Source of the DNA: Fonticula alba ATCC 38817
Taxonomy: Eukaryota > Protista > Nucleariida
Length of the DNA stretch: 44,323 bases
Assembly (NCBI GenBank): GCA_000388065.2
Contig: KB932201.1
Reading direction: 5' to 3' (one strand)
Shown here piece by piece: positions 28,628-40,576 of this stretch. Below the pieces are notes generated by a model. That model did no database searches, was not told the origin of the DNA, and was given only the letters and a program-made list of their open reading frames with translations. The translations under genes were made by a program, and so were the position numbers. Positions within the stretch are counted from its first letter, which is position 1. Each line of letters opens with the position of its first letter.

Positions 28628-31600
28628 ATGGATTCGCCCGGGACGCCGCCGCCGCCCGGGCCTCCCTTCGGGATAAAGCGCCCAGGCGAGGCGTCACCCG
28701 CCGGGCCGGAGGCCAAGCGCCGGCGCGGCTCGACTCCCGGCTGCCCCCCTTCCGCCCCCTCCGGGCCATCCAGCGGCCCCGGTGACCTGCCGTCAAGCCC
28801 CCCCGGGCCGGGCGGGTCCTTCGGGCCGGCGACCAGCCCCGCACGCCCGCCGCCCTGGCTGACCCCTCGTCGGGGATCGGGCACGGACACCGCCCGATCC
28901 AGCCCGGGCGTCTTCTTTCCGGCGGGGGCCATCACCGGGCAGCCTCGCGGGCCGGCGCCGCCTGGCCCGGCCCCTGGTCACCGGCCTCCCTCGCCCGAGC
29001 CGGAGACCGCGGCCCTGATGGGTCGCCTGGCGCGCGGGTCGGTCACCCTCATGGCCGGGCCGCTGGTTGGCGCCTGGCCGGACGAGCTGCTGGCCATGGC
29101 CGACTCCCCGAACCCGGCCCTCCTGGATGCCACGGCGGCATCGGCCCAAACGCTGTCGGACATTCAGCGGATCCGCGCAATGCGACAACACTCGTACGCC
29201 CCCGGCCCCGGGTGGTGCTCGTCGCCGGCTCCCCCCGGCGGCCTGCCATCCTCCCTTCCGGCCCTGCCCCTCCCTGGCTGACGCCCTCGCCCTGCCCTTC
29301 TCGACCAGAAACTCCCTCAACCACATGCTGGCCTCGAGCTCCTCCCTGGGCCCGGATGTCTTCTCGTCGGATGGCCCGGACCCGCCAGCCACCGACCCGG
29401 AGGATCTTCTCCCCCGGAGTTTGGCCGGGCCGGCGGGCTTTGACGAGCGCCCGGCCCTCAGCACGGCCTGGGCCCCGGCCTCGCCGCCGACCGAGCGCCG
29501 GGCCCCGGTGGCCGGGTCCGTCGGCCCGGCGATGGGCCCCTCCGCCGGGTGGGCCTCCCGGCCGGGGGATTCCGGCCCGCGGCCACCCCCGGCGGTCGAA
29601 CCCGTTCTCATGCTCCATGCTTCGGGGATTGGGGTGCGCCGGTGGCCCGCTCGACGGCCCTCCCGCCCGGGCGCACAGCTCGCCTGCCTTGACTCCATCG
29701 CGGACACTGACATGCACGTGTGCATATGCCCCTTGCTGGAACCGGGACCCCATCCTCATGCATGCTCTCTGCCTCTCCCGGCCTCTCTCCCTCTCCCTGC
29801 CCTCTCTGCGTCGGCCCTGGCCCTGGTAGAACGACTACTACCGGTCCGTCATGTCCTGGGAGCCGTCGGAGCTGCTGGCAGTCGGGCTGGAGTCGATGAT
29901 CTTCGTACACGGTGTCCACTCGACGCGCAGCACGCAGCTCTTCTCGCAGGCAGCCCTGCCGCGCTGGTCGCCGGGGCTCCTGCCACACCATGCGCGCACG
30001 ATCTCCGCCGTGGCCTGGGGCGATGTGTGTGGCTCCCCTTCATGCTCGCGTGCCTCCCTACCCCTTGCCCAGCTGACATATCCCCCCCCCCGTCCCCTCC
30101 CGCCCCCCGGGCCTTTTAGGCGACCACCCTGGCCGCGGCCACGAACTTCGGCGAGCTGGTCCTCCTGCGCTCGGATCACCTGAACTCCAGCATGGCCCTC
30201 CGCGGGCAGGCGGCCATTTTGTCCTTCGGCCAGCCGCTGGACGGCCTGGTCGGGGCCCTGTCCTGGCGCGATGCCGGGCTCCTGTCGCTCGGGAGCCACA
30301 ATGGGCGCATTGCGTCGGTCGACCCGCGCGCCGGGGTCGGGCAGCCGGTTTTGCTGTTCGACCGCCACCGGCCGGGCTACTCGCCGGGCCCGGCGGCCAT
30401 CGGCAATGGCGGCAGCCAGGCCGGCGGGCACGCGCTCACCGTGTGCAGCCTGGCCTGGTCGCCGTGCGGCCGGTGGCTGGCAAGCGGCGGCAGCGACCAC
30501 CTGCTGTGCTTGTGGGACCCCCGGTGGCCGAGGCAGCCGGTGGCCCGAGTGGCCCGGCACCAGGCGGCTGTCGGGGCGCTGGCCTGGTGCTCGGCCGACA
30601 TGGTGAGCTCGAGTGCCGGGCCCCTGGGGCCCGGGCTGGCCGATCGCCTGGCCCCGGGCACCGAGTCGGCCAGCCCCTCGGCCGAGGACGCGTGGCTGCG
30701 CTATTGGGAGGGCCTTGCTGAGGCGGAGCATCCGGGCCTGGCCGGCGGCCTGGCCGGGCCGGTGCTGGCCAGCGGCGGCGGCGCGGCCGACCGGTGCATC
30801 CGCCTGTGGGATGTCCTGCGGCCGGCGGCCGGGCTGGCGGCCGCGGCGACCCGGTGGCCCGGGCTGGCGGCCGATCCCGGCCCGGCCGGCCATGTGCGCG
30901 AGCTCTTTGCCCTGGACACCGGGTCCCAGGTGTGTGGCCTGGCCTTCGATCGGTCCACCCGGCAGCTGGTGTCGGCGCATGGGTTCTCCTCCAACAGTCT
31001 CTCGGTGTGGGGGCTTCGGCCGGGGGTGCGCCGGCGCCCGGGGGCACGGGTCCCGGTGCCTGGCGACCCGGGCTGGGCCCCGGCCGCGCTGGCCGGCGTG
31101 CCGCGCCCGGTGCCGGTTGTGCTGGACCCGGTGACCGGCCGCCCGGTCGGCCGGGGGGCCCTGCTGGGGACGCTGCACCGGCTGGATCCGAGCCGGTTCC
31201 CGGCGCCGCCGGGCCCCGCCGGGTGGACGGCCGCTGCCCCGCTGGCGGGGCTCGGCCAGCCCAGCCCCCACCCCTCGTTGGACCACCACTTTGAGGTGGC
31301 CCCGGCCCATGGAGACCGGGTCCTGCACCTGGCCCTGGCCGGGGATGGCCGGCACTTCGCCACGGCCTCCTTCGATCGGAGCATCCGCCTGTGGGATTGC
31401 CTGGATGTGGCGGCCCGCGAGGGGGCGGCCGGCCGGGCCGACGCCCGTGCCGGCCATGGCCACACCCACCTCCCGGCGCACCATGGGGGGGCGGCTCCAT
31501 TCCGGTCATCGGGCTCGGTGGACATCGGCGTCGGTCGGGGCAGCCCGCTGCCGCCGCCGCCGCCACCGGCGCTGGACCCGGCGGCCGGGACCCCGGCCTC

Positions 31601-32192
31601 CCGCCACCGCCGCCGGTATTTGAGTGTCCCGCGGCCGGCCCCAGCCGCCGAGGTGCTTTTCTTCCCGGCAACGCCCTCTCCCCCGCGACGGCAGGATCCC
31701 CATCAGCCGCCGCAGCAGCCGCAGCCGCAGCAGCCGCAGCATCACCCCGATGGGCTGACGCCCACCGGGGAGGACGCTGGCGGGTCCGGCCGGGCGTCCG
31801 CCAGCCCGGCCACACCAGCTCGCCCGCGCAGCGCCCACCCCGGCCATGCACCGGCCCCCCACTCGGCCAGCAGCGACGAGGAGCACCCGGCCCTGGCGGC
31901 CGGCAGTCCCGAGCCCTGGACCCCGAGCACCACCGGGGCGCTGCTGCTGCCGCAGCCACCGGCGTCGCCAGCCTCGCTTGGCCAGCCCCCGGGGTCGGGC
32001 CCGGGGCAGGCGCTCGGCCCCGGGCGTCGACCCCGCCACATGCTCGTGGCCACGGTCGGCCCCGGGCCCACGCTCGAGGCCCCCTCGGCCGAGCGCCTTG
32101 ATCGGCCCGAGGCGTCCGGCTCGCCGCTTTCCTCGTCCAGTTGGCGGTCCGGGCTCATCCGCTCGGAGTTGCGCCACCTGCAATTCCGCTAG
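28628..32192 (+). CDS. CDC20: Cdc20/Fizzy-related (Cdh1) family WD40 protein, highly divergent; join(28628..29193,29309..29633,29830..30024,30120..32192), ~1052 aa
   Basis: LHASGIG|NDYYRSVMSW (cf. LDAP..DDYYLN..DW), VCSLAWS..GRWLASGGSD, HQAAVGALAWC, LASGGGAADRCIRLW, DTGSQVC, LVSAHGFS.N.L.VW and H.DRVLHLAL..DG. All introns are phase-compatible. Cdc20 versus Cdh1 cannot be resolved by eye. Confidence 0.85.
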
Positions 32193-32580
32193 CCACCCAA
32201 CTGCCAATGTACTTGTGTCCGCCATGCGCCGCGCTGCCTCGGCAGTGCCCTCCCCAGGGCCGGATGCGACCTGCGCCGGGTGGAGTGGGAGGCGGACCGT
32301 GGGGGCGGGGGGGGGGGNNNNNNNNNNNNNNNNNNNNNNNNNNNNNNNNNNNNNNNNNNNNNNNNNNNNNNNNNNNNNNNNNNNNNNNNNNNNNNGACCG
32401 GGGGACTGGGAGGGCTTGGTTGGCAGGTCGCGCCTGGGGCTTTTAGGGTGCCGGAAGCGCGCCGTGGGACCGGGGGCGCGATCTCACTCCCCCCCCCCCC
32501 TCCTCCTCCTCCCTCCCTTTGTGCTTTCCTTGCGCCCCTCTGCCCACCCGTGAGCCAGTGCACAGGCATACACCCACCCG

Positions 32581-32584
<4 letters not shown>

Positions 32585-32618
<34 letters not shown>
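32585..32618. repeat. (CA)n microsatellite just upstream of the ERCC6 start
   Basis: Read directly from the sequence. Confidence 0.9.
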
Positions 32619-32619
<1 letters not shown>

Positions 32620-32637
32620 CCCTATCCGCCCGGAGCC

Positions 32638-35600
32638 ATGGACGACCAGGTCATCGACCTGCTCGACAGCGATGAGGAGGCCCGGCCGGCCCTCCGCCGT
32701 GGCAGGTCGGCCACCGCATCGCAGCCGCCCTCCGACCCGGTCGAGCTGAGTGACTCGGGGGAGGCCGAAAAGCCGGTGGTCTTGCTTCAGAGCACGCTCA
32801 GCTTCGCCCGTGCGGACGAACCCCGGGCCGAGCCCCTGGCCACCCCGCGACCCAATGCCGCCGTGGCCCTGGTCCAGTCGCGCATCGGGAGCTACTTTGC
32901 CGCCGGGGCCGGAGCGGTGCCGGAGTCGGCCGACGCGGCCGGCACCGGTGCCGGCCCCGCACCCGGGCCCGCCTCGGCCCCCGCCCCAGCCGACCCCAAC
33001 AGCGCCACTCCCTCGGACTTGGACGCCCTCGCGGCGCAGGGGCTCGGCGTGCGGGCGGCCAATGCCGAGGAGGTCAACCAGCGCCTCTGGGTGCAGGCCG
33101 GCCAGCGGCGGGTCTACCAGCTGGAGAAGTCGGTTCTCGAGGCCCAGCGGGACATCCAATTCCGCGAGACTTCACTTCAGTGCGTCTGCTCGGCTGCCCA
33201 TGCCCCCGGGGGCCGCCTGTGTCCTGTCTTTGCTCTTCTCCCCTTTTCCCCCTTCCCCGCGCTTCCCGCCCCGGCAGCCGGTCGCTCACCTGCCTTGCCC
33301 TCGGTTGATGCGTTGTGAAACCCTGCAGGACCGGCAAGATGGTGCTGGAGAACCTGCGCCAGCGGAATGCCCTTGAATCGATGGTGGCCTTTGAGGTTCG
33401 TCGCTGGCATCTGCCCCTTGCCCTTCCCCCCCCCCCTCCCTCCTCCCGCCTTTCATTGGGGCCGGCCGCCTGCCGAGCCCCTGCTCGAGCATCTACTAAC
33501 CGCCGCCACTTGGGCCGCTGGCTCGCAGGCCGAGCGCGTCGGCAAGCAGGAGACCGACCTGCGGAAGCGCCGGCGTGCGCTCGAGCAGATGGAGGTCCAC
33601 CTGTCGGAGGCGCGCCGCATGCTGGCTGCCGGGCCGCCGACCGGGTCTCGGCGGCTGACCGACATGTGGGCCGGGCTCGATGGCAACCCCCCGGAGTCGG
33701 AGTTCGATCGGCAGATTCGCACCGGGCAGATGACCCCGATGGATGCCCTGCGGCAGGACCGCCAGCGCCAGCGCCAGCAGCGCCTCGAGAGGGCCTCCGG
33801 GCTTTTCCGGCCCGGGGCGGCGCCTCCCCCGGGAGCCGGCCACTCGCGGGCCCCGCCCCCTGGGCCCCGGCCTCCCGTATGTCCCCACCTCTTCCGCCCT
33901 TGGCCCCCTTTTGCTTGTGGGTCCCTCGCCCTGTCTCTTTCTCCTCGAGTGCCACATGGCTGACCTGCCTGCCTGCCTGCCCGGTGTAGCGCCCAGGCGA
34001 TGGGGCGCCGCGCGCTCTCCCGAGCGAGGCCTCGCTCGCACGTCGTGCGGGCATGGTCCGCCCGCGCCCCGGCACCCCGGGCGCCCTGCCCCCGAGCAAG
34101 GCCCCACGCTCCGGGCGGGCCTCCTCCCCGGGGGAGAAGCCTGCCGCGGCTTCCTCGCGACCGCGGCTGATGGAGGTCATCCGGGCGATTGACGAGCGGC
34201 GTGCTCGTGGCCGCGCGGCCCCGGCCCCGGAAGACTCGCTGCCTCTGCCGGATTCGGCAGACGGCATGACTCGCAGTGCGTGCCGGTCTCTGTTCCTGCT
34301 GCCTGCAGGCCACACCCATGCATGCTGCTTACCATTGGCCTTCCCTGCTCCCCGCTCCCCTCTCCCCGCTCCCCTCATTCCCCCGTGCTACCCAGTTCAT
34401 TGTCAGTGTGGCGCGGCTTTTGCCGGCCCCTCCGAGCCGATAATCGAGTGCACGCGGTGCCTGCGCTGGAGCCACCTGGCCTGCGAGGGCCTGCTGGATG
34501 AGGCGTCCGGCCCTCGGCCTGGCGCCATCCATTCCGGCTTCCGGTGTTCCTTCTGCCTGCGCCGGATGGCCGCCGGGCAGGCCTCCAGCCGCCATGCCCG
34601 GCGCTTCGCCGATCCGGCCACCGGCGCCTCGGGCACCGGTGCTCGCCAGCGCCCCGGCGGCACCCTGCGCCCAGACGAGTATAGCGCCTCCTCCGATGAA
34701 GATGCCTTCCATTTGGGCGAGGGTGGCCGGTCGGACAGTGGCTCGGATCTGGATCTGGATCTGGGCGAGGGCCCCAGGCCTGGTCGGGCGGCGGGGCGCC
34801 CGGCCGCCGGGCCACTTCGGCGGCCAGGTGCTCGTGCGGCCGGCCGGTCGTCGGGCCGTTCGGCCAGCGAGGCGCCCTCGGACTCGGGGTCCGACTCGTC
34901 GGGCCGCTCGGACTCCGAGCCGGAGACCGAGGACCGGGACCCGGACGACATGGGCTGTGGCACCGGCCGGGCCGCCCCGGGCCGGCGCCGTGTTGTCACC
35001 AAGGAGGAGGATGCCTTCCCGGATGATCGGAATGAGGCATCCTATGTGGAGCGCGTCGTGCGCCTGGCACGAGTGAGTGTCCTTCGACGCCTGCGTCTGC
35101 TGCTGGTGCCCCCCCCCCCCCGCCCCCCGGTGCATTGCACCCATTTGCATGGTTTCCTTGGCCCCCCCCCCCCCCGCCTCGTCCGCCTCTCTCCCGCCCT
35201 CTCTTTTTCTTCCTCTCTCTCTCTCTCTCTCTATTTCTCTTTCGCCTGCCCGCCTGCCCGCCTACCCGCCTGCCTGCCTCGTCGCCGCTTGATGCCACCG
35301 ACCAGGCTGCTAACCATGCTGCATGCGTGCAGGACATCCCGGATGCCCGACTCAACCGCTTCTCGCCGGATGCATACACGGGCGTCCAGGCGGTGGGGGA
35401 TGCCCTGTCGACGGGCCGCGCCGCGGTCCTGCCCCTGCTGACCGGGCCCGATGCGCCGCCCTGCGATCCGGCCGATCTGGCCGATGTCGAGGCGCTGGCC
35501 GACCCCGGGGCCTGGAATCTGGCTCGCGCTCTGGCGGCCCTTGGCCGCGGGCAGCCGGACGATATCTTCATCTTCGATGAGCCGGAGTTCGAGGAGGGGG

Positions 35601-36842
35601 AAGAAGGCGTCCAGGCCGAGGTCGAGCCGGCGGAACGCCTGCGCGTGCCGCTCGATCTCTGGGAGGCCCTCTTCGACTACCAGCGAACCTGCCTCCGGTG
35701 GCTTTGGCAGCTGGAGCTGTCCAAGGTGGGCGGCATCATCGGCGATGAGATGGTGCGTTGCCGGTGAACGGGTGTCGCGCCTGCCATTGCCTGCCTGCTC
35801 CACAGCCGGCATCTCCCTTCCACTGACCGCGACCACACCCAGGGTCTCGGCAAGACAGTCCAAACCGCGTCCTTCATCCATGCCGTGCAGTACACCTTCT
35901 CCTGCCTGCCCCATGACACCCCGGCCTACATTCGTCGCCCGACGATTGTCGTCTGCCCGGCCACCCTGATCAAGCAGTGGGCGCGTGAGCTGCGCCTCTG
36001 GGCGCCGGCCCTTCGGGTGGTGATCTTCCACACGTCGCTGACGGCGGGCTCGAGTGCCGACGAGCTCCGCCGGGTATTCCGCCGCGTGTCCAAGCTCCCC
36101 AGTGCGTGCGCTGCTTTTCCTTGTCTTTTTTTTTCCATGTCGTCCATTCCTTGGCTGGGGCATTTCCCCCTTTCCCCCGGCCCATCGCTGACACTGGCGC
36201 TGGTGGGACGCGCGGCCGGGCCGAAGACACTATCCTGATCACCACCTATGAGAGTCTGAAGTCGCATGCGTCTGCGCTGCTCGGCTCACGCATGAGCCGG
36301 GCCTTCCTGGACGAGGGCCACCGCATCAAGAACCCGGACGCGGCGATCACCATCGCCTGTAAGCGACTGCGTGTGCGTGCCGGAATGGGCCCCGCGGCAT
36401 GGCCCCTGCCCATGTGTCTCTCCTTCTGCTTCTCTCCGCTTTTTTGGGAACCTCCTTTGTCGCCCCCCGCCCGCCCTCGCTGCCCCAAGCCCCCTGACCA
36501 TGTGCCTCCTGGCCGCCCTCTCGGCTGTGACTTCCAGACGCCACACCGGGTCATCCTTTCCGGGTCGCCGATCCAAAATCGCCTGAGTGAGCTCTGGTCG
36601 CTGTTCGACTTCATTGTTCCCTCCAAGCTCGGCGTGCGTTCCACCAGGCATGCCCTTTGCCTTTCGTCTGCTTGCGGCTCCTCTGACCCATTCGTCGTCT
36701 CGGCCAGACTTTGCCCGTTTTCCAGGCGCAATTCGAGACGCCCATTCGCCTGGGGGGCTTTTCCAATGGTACACCGGCCCGATGCATGCGCATGCAGGCC
36801 ATCCCTCCTGGCCCCTTCGCCCTGGCCTCCCTCTCCTCTTCC

Positions 36843-36888
<46 letters not shown>

Positions 36889-39102
36889 NNNNNNNNNNNN
36901 NNNNNNNNNNNNNNNNNNNNNNNCGCCCCCGCCCCTCCTCCCTCCCGCTGGCCGTCCGCCTGACATGACCATCATCCGGCCTCCTCGATAGCGACTCTGC
37001 TTCAGCGCCGGACAGCCATTCGCGTGGCCTCTGTCCTGAAGGACATCATCAAGCCCTATCTCCTTCGTCGACTGAAGGCCGATGTCGACCTGGTCCTGCC
37101 GAAGCGCACCGAGCAGGTCCTCTTCTGCCGGCTGGCCGACGCCCAGAGGGCCGCATACCATCGGTTCTTGCGCGGGCGCCTGCTCGAGCGCATCCTCGAT
37201 GGCTCGGTCAATTGCCTGGTCGGTGTCAGCCTGCTGCGCAAGATCTGCAACCATCCTCTGCTGGAAACCGAATCCGAGGACCGGGTGTGTATCGGCACCG
37301 GCGGCGGGAGGCAAATGGGCTCGCCCCTCTTCCCTGCCTGCCTTGCCTCGCCTCCTTTCGCCCCTGCTTGGTAGTAGTTGCATTGCACTTTGGTGGGCCG
37401 CCTGCTGACTTCCTCCCCTGTGGCTTGCTGCCCTTCCGCCCGGTGGCGTGCGCGCTTGTCAGCTTGATCCCCGGCGAGCTGACCCGCAGGACAGCGGCAA
37501 GCTGGCCGTGACGATGGCCCTGCTGCAGGCGTGGTCCGGGCGTGGCTCCCTCTCCCCGGGGTCACCCCCTGCGGTGGATTCGGGCCCCGCCGCGGGCCCG
37601 GCCCCGCCGCGGACCCTCCACCGGGCCCTTGTGTTTGCGCAGACGCGTCAGATGCTGGACATCATCGAGGCGGCCGTGGCCCTTGGCGGGCAGCCACTTT
37701 CCGCGGACGAGGTGGCTGCCGGGGGCCTGCGGCCGGACACCCCCCGCCGGGGCTTCCGGTACATCCGCATGGATGGCACAACCCCGGTGGCCCAGCGCGA
37801 CGCCCTGGTGACGGCCTTCAACAATGAGACCCTCCTGGCACGGAGTGTCAGCAACAGCGGGGTCAATCCCTTTGCCGAGTCGGTCCTGGCCCGGGCCGAG
37901 CAGGCGCCCGAGGCGGCTGGCCCGGGCGCCGACATGATCGGCCCCCCGGAGCCGGCCTTCCTCTTCCTCCTCACAACGCATGTGGGTGGCCTGGGGTTGA
38001 ACTTGACCGGTGCCGACCGGGTGCTCATCTACGATCCGGACTGGGTATGTCCTGTGTCGGGCTCCTCTCCCTGGGTGGGTGCCTGTGTGACTGGACCATT
38101 TCACTGACCCCCGTCTCCTCGCTCCGGGCATCTCGCCCTCCCCCTCGGGTGCTCCCTCTGTTGGTTTGTTTGTTCGTTTGTTTTCCTTTCCTCGTCACCC
38201 TCGCACGGGCGCACACTTGCCCGCCGCTTTCGCTAGAACCCGGCCACGGACTTGCAGGCGCGCGAGCGAGCTTGGCGCCTGGGGCAGCGGCGCGATGTCA
38301 CGGTCATCCGTCTTCTGACGGCCGGCACCATCGAGGAGAAGATCTACCAGCGCCAGGTATTCAAGCAGCTCATTTCCAATCGCGTGCTCAAGGATCCCAA
38401 CTCCACGAACGATCGGGCCGCCTCGATGGCCGGCATGCTGCTCGGCTCGCGCGATATGCATGACCTCTTCACGCTCGAGGAGGATCCCCTTCCGCCCGGG
38501 GGCCCGGCTGGCGGGGGCTCCCGGTCCGATGTCCCGACCAAGACCGAGAGCCAAGTGGACGGGGTACTGCGCCTGGATGAGCGCCAGTATGAGGAAGCCC
38601 AGCCCACTGCCCAAAGTGAGGATAACATGATCCTGCAAGGTGCGCGAGTCACAAATGCCCGGGGCTTGGGTGGAGGCTCGCAGCGCGGCACGACGCGGCG
38701 CCGGCAGGCGAGCTCCTGATGGGGCTCTGTCGCTTGGATCGTGTCTTCCTTTTTTCCTTTCTCCTCTTTGGCGCTCACAGCCTCCCATATATGCCCACGA
38801 CTGTCCGGCTGGCCCTTTGCCACACCCAAGAGCTCCTCAACAGCAAGGACATCCACGCCTCGGAGTCCCACGATTATCTGATCGGCGAGTCGTCCGGCTC
38901 CAATGGCGATTTGACGACGGTCTCTTTTACTCGCTTCCACCAAGACGAAGGTGCGTACTGGCAACTGGTCCCCCTCAGTCGGTGCTGAGCCTTCTCCTTG
39001 CCTTCGCCCTCCCCCCCCCCCTGACGGTCATGGCTACCGACAATGTTCGGGATTTCTTGGACCCGTGCTCCTTTGATGTGTCCTGGCTCTCTCCCTCTCT
39101 CT

Positions 39103-39135
<33 letters not shown>

Positions 39136-40284
39136 ACGCACACGCGCACGCAAAAACCCAACCACCCGCCAGCCCAACGCATTGCCGAGCAGGCATCGCG
39201 TGCTCTGCAGGAGTCTGGTGAGCGCATCCGCCAGGCGTACCGGACCTCCTTCAATCAGACCGAGGACGAGTCCCCCAGTTCGGTGGGCATGCCCACATGG
39301 ACCGGGCGCTTTGGTGAGGCCGGGCAGCCGGACGAGCCGAAGGACACCGGGCCGGTGGTGTGGCTGCGTGGCGGGTCGGCTGGGCCGAGTGCCGCCCCGG
39401 GGCGCCGGAATGCCCTGCCCCCCCAGGCCGCTGAGCCGCCCCGGCAATCGGCCTTTGATCGGCTGCGCCTCGAGCGGCAGGCCCAACATGCTCAGCGCCA
39501 GCAGCAGCAGCAGCAGCGTGCTGGGAGCACCGGCCCCGGCGCGGGAACGGCTTTCCAGCGGGAATTCGGCACCGGGGCCGGTACCGGTGTGGACCGCACG
39601 GCGTCGACATTTGCCCGGCCGGATGCCACGCGTGGGACATTCGCCGGGTCGGCTCTGGCATCCAGCACTCGCGGCCGCACGGCGCTGGCGGGGGCTGGCA
39701 TCGGGCCGCAGGCGCATCACCTGGCGCGGCCGGGCTCCGGCAGTCGTGGTCTTTCGGAGGATGACCGGGGCCGTGGCTGGGCCGTTGGCTCGCTGGTATC
39801 CGGCGCCGGGCCCGATGATGACCCATACCGGCATCCTCCGCACCAGGGGGAGGGGCTTGCGTCGGATGAGGAGGGTGCCCCGGGCCCGGGGGCCTCCTCG
39901 TCGAGCCTTCTGTCGGCCTTCCGCCGGCGACGCGATGACGCCATGTCCAGCACGTCGGTCCTGCGCACGGTTCGCGTGCGCTCAGCTGCCCAGCCGACCC
40001 CTTCGCCGGGCGAGCCTGCCCTGGCCGAGGGCGCTCTGCCGGAAATCCTAGATCACTTCCGGCGGCAGCCCATCTTGAGCTTCGAAGATTTGAATGCCGC
40101 CGCTGCGGCCAGCGGCGCGATCGAGGGGGGAGGCCAACTCCCGAGCCTGCTGGCCCGGTCACCCGAGCACCGGCTCGCCGTGCAGCGTCTCTTCGAATCG
40201 GTGTCCGAACCGGTGGCCGGGGCCGGGGTCGGCGAGCATGACCCACGAGTGCCGCGCATGCTGAATCGCGAATTTCTCCCCTGA
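32638..40284 (+). CDS. ERCC6: CSB/ERCC6/Rad26 SNF2-family ATPase (transcription-coupled repair), 15 exons, ~1794 aa
   Basis: Exons 32638-33179, 33329-33395, 33529-33876, 33990-34275, 34396-35072, 35333-35752, 35843-36101, 36227-36372, 36538-36633, 36708-36768, 36992-37284, 37490-38044, 38237-38639, 38831-38950, 39173-40284 sum to 5385 nt in frame. Motifs: [104 protein letters not shown]. Confidence 0.95.
34396..34556 (+). other. PHD zinc finger (C4-H-C3) at the start of ERCC6 exon 5
   Basis: IHCQCG-x9[16 protein letters not shown]~19-FRCSFC has all eight predicted zinc ligands in PHD spacing. Confidence 0.8.
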
Positions 40285-40576
40285 ACACATCACCAATAGA
40301 CACACACACACACACACGTGGACGTTGTCCAGGCACAAAGGGGGGAAGGAAAAAAGGGGGCATGAAAGGTGTGCTTGGCGTGCCGATGCGCAGTGGGCAC
40401 ATGTGTGTGTATTCATCATCGGCCGACCTGGCCAATATCAGCGCAAGCCGCCGGCCAAGGGGGGAATGGCGAGGGACGGGGCAAAGGGGAAAAAAAGAAG
40501 GACAATGCGGCAGAATGGCCGAGCAAGTGCCGCAGAGGCGGCACAGGCACTGGGTGGGGCGCATCCGGGGGCGCCT

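Follow-up and report, generated by a model that had tools for sequence, protein, structure and literature searches.

A stretch of 44,323 nucleotides (nt) from contig KB932201.1 of the Fonticula alba ATCC 38817 assembly (GCA_000388065.2), called the window below, carries on its plus strand a whole gene for an orthologue of CSB/ERCC6/Rad26 at 32638-40284. Within the N-terminal part of its coding frame lies a C4HC3 zinc finger core at 34401-34556, which corresponds to residues ~417-468 of the gene model. CSB/ERCC6/Rad26 is an ATPase of the SNF2 type; it attaches to RNA polymerase II that has stalled and initiates transcription-coupled repair. We propose that this CSB orthologue has probably gained a genuine PHD finger that would act as a histone-tail tether, with histone H3 methylated at lysine 4 (H3K4me) as the likeliest ligand. 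The parts of this proposal are not equally firm. That a real PHD finger sits inside the CSB protein is very probable, and the nature of its ligand is stated with more reserve below.

The finger itself is described by its ligand spacing, C-x-C-x12-C-x2-C-x4-H-x2-C-x21-C-x2-C, with a Trp placed two residues ahead of the His (W-S-H). A C4HC3 pattern free of stops occurs a single time in all six frames of the window. When 200 windows were simulated with a second-order Markov model, at least one such pattern was found in 0.5% of them, and the pattern combined with W-x-H was found in none (0/200). The GC content by codon position is 0.64/0.64/0.80 in the finger, with a raised third position as in the other exons. 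The Pfam model PF00628 (PHD) matches over its full length, profile positions 1-47 of 47 against residues 2-53 of exon 5, with E=3e-4, and the second-best Pfam model is PHD_5 (E=3e-3). In a phmmer search of the PDB, 37 of the 38 matches at E<=10 are PHD fingers, and six have E<0.01. The matches include KMT2D PHD6 (E=4e-4), KMT2C PHD7, PHF13 (E=3e-3) and PHF23 (E=6e-3), and further PHF20, MLL1 PHD3, SET3, Pygopus, BPTF and SHPRH. A sequence-only reading made earlier on this DNA had likened the finger to readers of the Set3/MLL5/PHF20 type; the neighbours PHF13, PHF23, PHF20, MLL1 PHD3 and SET3 are the named families or close kin, and the resemblance holds. Besides the ligands, the finger has the signature residues F-A-G, P-I-I-E-C, W-x-H-L-x-C and G-F-x-C of PHD fingers. 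Every neighbour cluster listed by the ESM Atlas is PHD or zinc-finger PHD-type; the scores lie at 0.79-0.88, and each is weak when taken alone. A RING, C1 or FYVE identity was considered and rejected, for the ligands come in the order C4HC3 and C1 matches only in part (E=0.1). Judged by its sequence, the finger is of PHD type and divergent, falling three bits short of the Pfam cut-off.

Is the host gene really CSB? The window is GC-rich (~70%) eukaryotic DNA with short GT-AG introns. The gene is modelled with 15 exons and 14 introns, and its coding length is 5385 nt (1794 codons and a stop). The phases close exon by exon, there are no internal stops, and all 14 introns begin with GT and end with AG. 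The model was assembled exon by exon, and separate exons or open frames, not the joined protein, were used for the searches. We built a profile from 16 full-length CSB/Rad26 orthologues and ran it against the open frames of the window, where its matches, all on the plus strand, are collinear from 33541 to 39480. Profile positions 88-167 match 33541-33783 (E=0.018) with the alignment E-x-E-R-x-IRTG-x-x-TP. This match belongs to exon 3 (33529-33876), in which there is a 13-residue CSB N-terminal motif; its part IRTGQMTP at 33715-33738 is the counterpart of E-x-E-R-x-LIRTGKITPF in the orthologue consensus. Profile positions 210-273 match 34857-35066 weakly (E=4; DD..E..Y..R). Positions 301-846, the ATPase core, match 35609-38584 in ten consecutive segments with E from 2e-37 to 8e-7, plus one weak segment at 0.045. 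Positions 914-1029 match 39136-39480 (E=2e-6), including an 11-residue C-terminal motif that also matches residues 946-965 of yeast Rad26. The last exon (39173-40284) holds this motif and the stop codon, and in the same profile match the C-terminal family motifs HD..I, EA.R.A..AL and PTWTG.SG.AG are present. By eye, exon 1 resembles the leucine-latch/LGV motif, not significantly. IRTGQMTP was also considered as the "leucine latch" and rejected, since the papers put the latch at the extreme N-terminus.

The ATPase core itself separates the gene from other SNF2 subfamilies. Exons 6-13 (35333-38639) run from motif I through helicase-C to the ERCC6-specific post-helicase segment. Motif I, GDEM|GLGKT, is divided by intron 6, so that exon 6 ends with G-D-E-M and exon 7 opens with G-L-G-K-T, and motif II can be read directly as LDEGHRIKN. 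Matches of PF00176 (SNF2-rel_dom) on exons 6, 7, 8, 9 and 11 tile profile positions 1-288, and PF00271 (Helicase_C) matches exon 12. Exon 13 scores 83.9 bits with human ERCC6, 79.9 with K. phaffii Rad26 and 74.3 with yeast Rad26, against 40.9 for RAD54 as the next subfamily. For exon 12 the ERCC6/Rad26 set gives 63.7, 55.8 and 55.4 bits, against 41.4 for the next SNF2 subfamily. In tblastn searches, named Rad26/rhp26/ERCC6/CHR8 proteins are collinear from 35609 to 39330; the best collinear partners are named rhp26, RAD26, ERCC-6 and CHROMATIN REMODELING 8 and come from fungi, a flatworm, yam, Pelomyxa, Hammondia and Rhodelphis. NCBIfam gave matches only to prokaryotic Snf2 models, far under their cut-offs. 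These scores and collinear matches indicate that the gene is clearly an ERCC6/CSB/Rad26 orthologue, as the sequence-only reading had named it.

There is a further question of how tightly the finger is tied to the CSB frame. Exon 5 (34396-35072, plus strand) consists of 225 codons in one open frame, with the PHD finger followed by an acidic Ser/Asp/Gly/Arg-rich linker and then an 11-residue motif at 35022-35054, which aligns weakly with the orthologue consensus DDGD...Y..RL in the collinear place. The preceding exon 4 (33990-34275, plus strand) is a Pro/Arg/Ala-rich linker in which Pfam recognised no domain, and exons 3 and 5 carry on its frame on either side. The last base of exon 4 is 34275, before the donor GTGCGT, and exon 5 opens after the acceptor ...cccag; the codon split between them, a|tt, gives Ile, followed by H-C-Q-C. 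Exon 5 ends at 35072 with the donor GTGAGT, and exon 6 starts at 35333. The sequence-only reading had put the finger in frame inside the CSB gene with exon borders at 34275, 34396, 35072 and 35333. Both points were confirmed: the eight ligands share a single frame with the downstream motif, and the four borders are right to the base. The predicted intron 4 (34276-34395, plus strand) is 120 nt long, in frame, stop-free and of phase 1, with the GTGCGT donor, a pyrimidine-rich tract and a cag acceptor, and its GC content by codon position is flat (0.68/0.65/0.68). Its retention would add 40 residues and keep the frame. Since the open reading frame (ORF) at 34053-35441 is unbroken through exon 4, intron 4 and exon 5, the finger is in frame with its flanks whether intron 4 is spliced or not. 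Moreover, the finger and the downstream motif occupy one uninterrupted frame, and therefore the fusion does not depend on the splice calls. On the orthologue profile the place of the finger is between positions 167 and 210, a part that is nothing but linker in the orthologues; the finger stands ~145 residues past the IRTG motif and ~155 residues ahead of the DDGD-like motif. The start of the finger at an exon boundary had also been taken as consistent with exon shuffling. The 5' edge does meet a phase-1 intron, but past the 3' edge the same exon continues for 170 codons. The case for exon shuffling as the origin of the finger is weak, because only the 5' edge meets an intron and that intron is itself predicted.

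The distribution of the finger was surveyed in 153 full-length orthologues bearing motif I, the N-terminal part being 150 residues or longer in 151 of them. Their sources are fungi, a plant, a flatworm, an amoebozoan, an apicomplexan and Rhodelphis, all distant, with no close relative of F. alba among them. Not one of the 153 has even a loose C4HC3 pattern, and in none do six Cys or more fall within 65 residues; the earlier statement that human CSB and yeast Rad26 lack a PHD finger agrees with this count. PF00628 was likewise found in none of the 120 best matches to the orthologue profile, all of them fungal Rad26/rhp26 proteins from Zoopagomycota, Mortierellomycota, Mucoromycota, chytrids and yeasts. 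Exon 5 searched against the 150 proteins from the HMMER search with exon 12 gave nothing at E<=10. An exhaustive HMMER search with exon 12 returned a 220-residue ORF of the same organism on a Logan contig, and the next match scored 89 bits. A word search with residues 112-340 of the stop-free ORF gave no relatives, probably with the low-complexity words swamping the candidates, and a word search with the finger alone gave three candidates, none of them scoring. A metagenome scan for the finger yielded 600 pattern matches, none of which was confirmed. Length bands, or the requirement that words be shared exactly, restricted these searches for relatives of the finger, and their negative outcome therefore does not prove absence. 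In the literature, a plant-wide survey reported PHD solely in the Mi-2 subfamily (PMC10589754), yeast Rad26 is reported to be without any methyl-lysine reader domain (PMC2836574), and our search found no paper linking a PHD finger with ERCC6/Rad26. The gain of a PHD finger in CSB is apparently lineage-specific when set against these distant orthologues, a comparison set that lies outside the nucleariid sister species.

Then what might the finger bind? Its first half aligns with that of PHF13 (3o7a), 28 residues of the finger against 26 of PHF13. The fingers of PHF13 and PHF23, which are readers of di- and trimethylated H3 lysine 4 (H3K4me2/3; 3o7a, 3o70, 6wxk), share with it a first half of the form C-x-C-x3-F-A-G-..-P-(M/I)-I-E-C-x2-C-x2-W-x-H-L-x-C. 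They differ in that the F. alba finger has two extra residues before the P-I-I-E-C strand, an unrelated second half with a long loop of 21 residues, and an entirely different host protein. In PHF13 the H3K4me3 cage is formed by F241, M246 and W255 while E248 holds H3R2, and mutating any of them abolishes binding (PMC4915813). The residues of the finger aligned with F241, M246, W255 and E248 are Phe, Ile, Trp and Glu, and because of this correspondence the H3 N-terminus methylated at K4 is the likeliest ligand. A trimethyl-lysine cage needs a minimum of two aromatic residues (PMC6534582), and the aligned Phe and Trp provide two. The best overall matches are with other fingers, MLL4/KMT2D PHD6 and MLL3/KMT2C PHD7 (6o7g, 8u2y, 6mlc), at E=4e-4 to 6e-4 over residues 12-54. 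Shared with them are the core I-x-C-x2-C-x-R-W-x-H-x-x-C-E-x-L and the end G-F-x-C-x2-C. Whether the finger would bind a histone tail at all we regard as evenly balanced, and the narrower assignment to H3K4me2/3 is put forward tentatively, with the chances somewhat below even.

Several observations weigh against the explanation as proposed. For the finger, the PF00628 score of 21.2 bits lies under the curated gathering threshold of 24, so that the PHD profile check suggested by the sequence-only reading came out positive in extent and E-value but short of the cut-off. An AlphaFold2 model of the 64-residue finger, made from the single sequence without an alignment, was poor, with a mean predicted local distance difference test score of 51. 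For the frame, one of the two N-terminal anchors that had been called CSB-specific, IRTGQMTP, stands, but the match of the other, the 11-residue motif downstream of the finger (E=4), is not significant by itself. The RNA available consists of three small runs of 2012 (X1-X3) under the same species label, kept as contigs, and they contain no read or contig over the finger or over the junctions 34275/34396 and 35072/35333. For the ligand, the third cage position is Ile, neither Met nor an aromatic residue. The residues that would receive Ala1 of H3 cannot be identified; the alignment with PHF13 does not extend over the second half of the finger, and the Ala1-pocket residues V268, P269, E270 and F272 of PHF13 have no clear counterparts. 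The 21-residue loop in that second half is Pro/Gly-rich, and the closest fingers, MLL4 PHD6 and MLL3 PHD7, are not H3K4me3 readers. Do these points favour another account? The low Pfam score and the low-confidence model, together with the lack of any relative of the finger in the two word searches and the metagenome scan, would fit a chance arrangement of Cys and His in a GC-rich low-complexity linker that forms no folded zinc finger. We consider this very improbable, given the rarity of the pattern in simulated windows, its absence from all 200 once W-x-H is included, the presence of PHD signature residues that are not ligands, and the matches at E=4e-4 to 6e-3 with solved PHD fingers of six different kinds. 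An artefact of the gene model, in which the stretch with the finger is skipped, intronic or on a separate short transcript and so falls outside the mature CSB mRNA, draws on the lack of RNA, since 33450-36700 has no read or contig in runs X1-X3 except low-complexity scraps; it also draws on intron 4 having no clear branch-point consensus and on the statistical weakness of the downstream anchor. Against it, no stop is met from exon 4 through the finger to the end of exon 5, the GC content at the third codon position is coding-like, and chance would hardly put a rare, intact pattern of eight ligands into an intron in frame with the sequence on both sides. The intron between exons 5 and 6, GTGAGT...ctaac...cag, is also a strong one and keeps the phase, and exon 6 leads directly into motif I. 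The weak DDGD-like anchor is dispensable, because exon 5 keeps its phase into exon 6 and on to the ATPase. An artefact is on balance improbable, though less so than a chance pattern.

A stronger competitor is a real PHD finger in CSB with another ligand, such as the H4 tail in a groove of the K16ac type, unmodified H3, or a Trp-Phe motif in a repair or elongation factor. Its best solved relatives by score, MLL4 PHD6 (6o7g, 8u2y) and MLL3 PHD7 (6mlc), which also score best with its second half, point in this direction: MLL4 PHD6 reads H4K16ac (PMC6534582), and PHD6 and PHD7 both bind the Trp-Phe motif (PMC12934300). The equivalents of L1520, W1529 and E1540 in the finger are Ile, Trp and Glu. 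In S. pombe, the remodelling by Rhp26 requires the H4 tail and not the H3 tail, according to a work cited in PMC13294370. But the finger does not possess the full set of a Leu-Leu-Trp groove and acidic clusters (EED1518, E1540/E1544) of an H4K16ac reader. Opposite E1544, which H4K16ac binding requires, stands a Pro; in place of the acidic helix EDDVE there is a Pro/Gly/Arg loop, and nothing in the finger aligns with L1504. In turn, its first half (C-x-C-x3-F-A-G...P-I-I-E-C) is like that of PHF13/PHF23 and contributes a second aromatic residue that K16ac grooves lack. This competitor is unlikely, and yet far less so than the two accounts that deny the finger, and a genuine PHD finger acting as a tether, most plausibly for H3K4me, is still the explanation we prefer.

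Transcription of the gene can be followed at one place only. Exon 10 (36708-36768, plus strand) is the sole part of the gene present in a spliced RNA contig. This contig, of 162 nt and from run X1, covers exactly 36708-36768 and then continues with 30 letters identical to 36992-37021. It joins 36768 to 36992, and therefore the gene is transcribed and intron 10 (36769-36991) is spliced out. Inside this intron there is an assembly gap (a run of N at 36889-36923) flanked by long poly-C. No coding sequence is lost in the gap, since the spliced contig passes over it from exon 10 into exon 11.

How does the protein compare with known remodelers? In its core it scores above all other SNF2 subfamilies with human CSB/ERCC6, S. 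cerevisiae Rad26, S. pombe Rhp26 and K. phaffii Rad26. The order of elements is common to CSB/Rad26, namely IRTG..TP, the DDGD-like motif, motif I, DEGH and helicase-C, then HD..I, A..AL and PTWTG.FG.AG. In canonical CSB/Rad26 the N-terminus, a disordered and auto-inhibitory stretch (PMC6125617, PMC13294370) free of domains, governs how the protein engages chromatin, whereas in F. alba it is about twice the median length and has a PHD finger. The region ahead of ATPase motif I (32638-35752) has ~780 residues, compared with a median of ~370 in the 153 orthologues. Outside the finger this region is of low complexity, rich in Pro/Arg/Ala and then in Ser/Asp/Gly. F. alba differs from canonical CSB/Rad26 also in an insert of ~41 residues in ATPase lobe 2 (37832-37954), located between the conserved F-N and F-L-F-L-L-T-T, for which the profile of 16 orthologues has no counterpart (positions 714 to 716). 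A second insert, rich in Ser/Pro/Gly, is at ~37544-37615. A SNF2 motor and a PHD finger are likewise combined in Mi-2/CHD3-5 and SHPRH, and the PHD of SHPRH (2m85) matches the F. alba finger weakly (E=0.23). Unlike these proteins, the F. alba protein has an ERCC6-type motor and lacks chromodomains and a RING. Its finger lies in the N-terminal linker, neither in tandem ahead of chromodomains nor inside the ATPase. Membership in Mi-2 or SHPRH was rejected on account of the ERCC6-type motor, and the finger is a domain gain independent of Mi-2/CHD3-5 and SHPRH.

Some other features of the gene and its surroundings can be noted. The donor hexamer GTGCGT is used in 7 of the 14 introns (33180, 34276, 35753, 36102, 36373, 36634 and 38951), and in several introns of the gene there are C-rich tracts and sites resembling a branch point, ctaac or ctgac. 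Microsatellites of the type (CA)n/(GT)n are found just before the start codon (32590-32620), in intron 14 (39100-39150) and just after the stop (40300-40320). Directly upstream of the CSB gene, on the same strand, there is a long WD40-like ORF at 30192-32192, separated from the gene by a gap of N at ~32300-32380.

What could such a finger do for CSB? Placed in the middle of the N-terminal region, it would add a histone-tail or peptide anchor to the protein, and the tether may concentrate or orient the remodeler on the nucleosomes of active genes. A bolder version is that the PHD finger lets the CSB motor recognise H3K4me2/3, or some other state of a tail, by itself, so that transcription-coupled repair by nucleotide excision (TC-NER) would be wired directly to a histone mark; binding of the mark might recruit the motor to nucleosomes of active genes, or might relieve the N-terminal auto-inhibition there. 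We think this version rather unlikely, a little less probable than the H3K4me2/3 assignment. To our knowledge, the coupling from mark to CSB in yeast and humans is indirect. The recruitment of yeast Rad26 is stimulated by H3K36 methylation, yet the protein has no methyl-lysine reader (PMC2836574), and K. phaffii Rad26 can bind and remodel nucleosomes without the H3 tail (PMC13294370).

The way in which CSB/Rad26 locates the chromatin of active genes and engages it is an unsettled question. The value of the present finding is moderate, as it concerns a single lineage, the function is inferred, and such domain accretion is common. In evolutionary terms, it is a further example of how the promiscuous PHD module joins chromatin enzymes, in this instance within a subfamily for which no such case had been reported. 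A natural CSB with a built-in PHD finger gives an experimental handle on the direct reading of marks in recruitment or remodelling. If the proposal is true, the F. alba protein would be a natural "reader-remodeler" CSB, which could be used to test the effects of chromatin marks on TC-NER.

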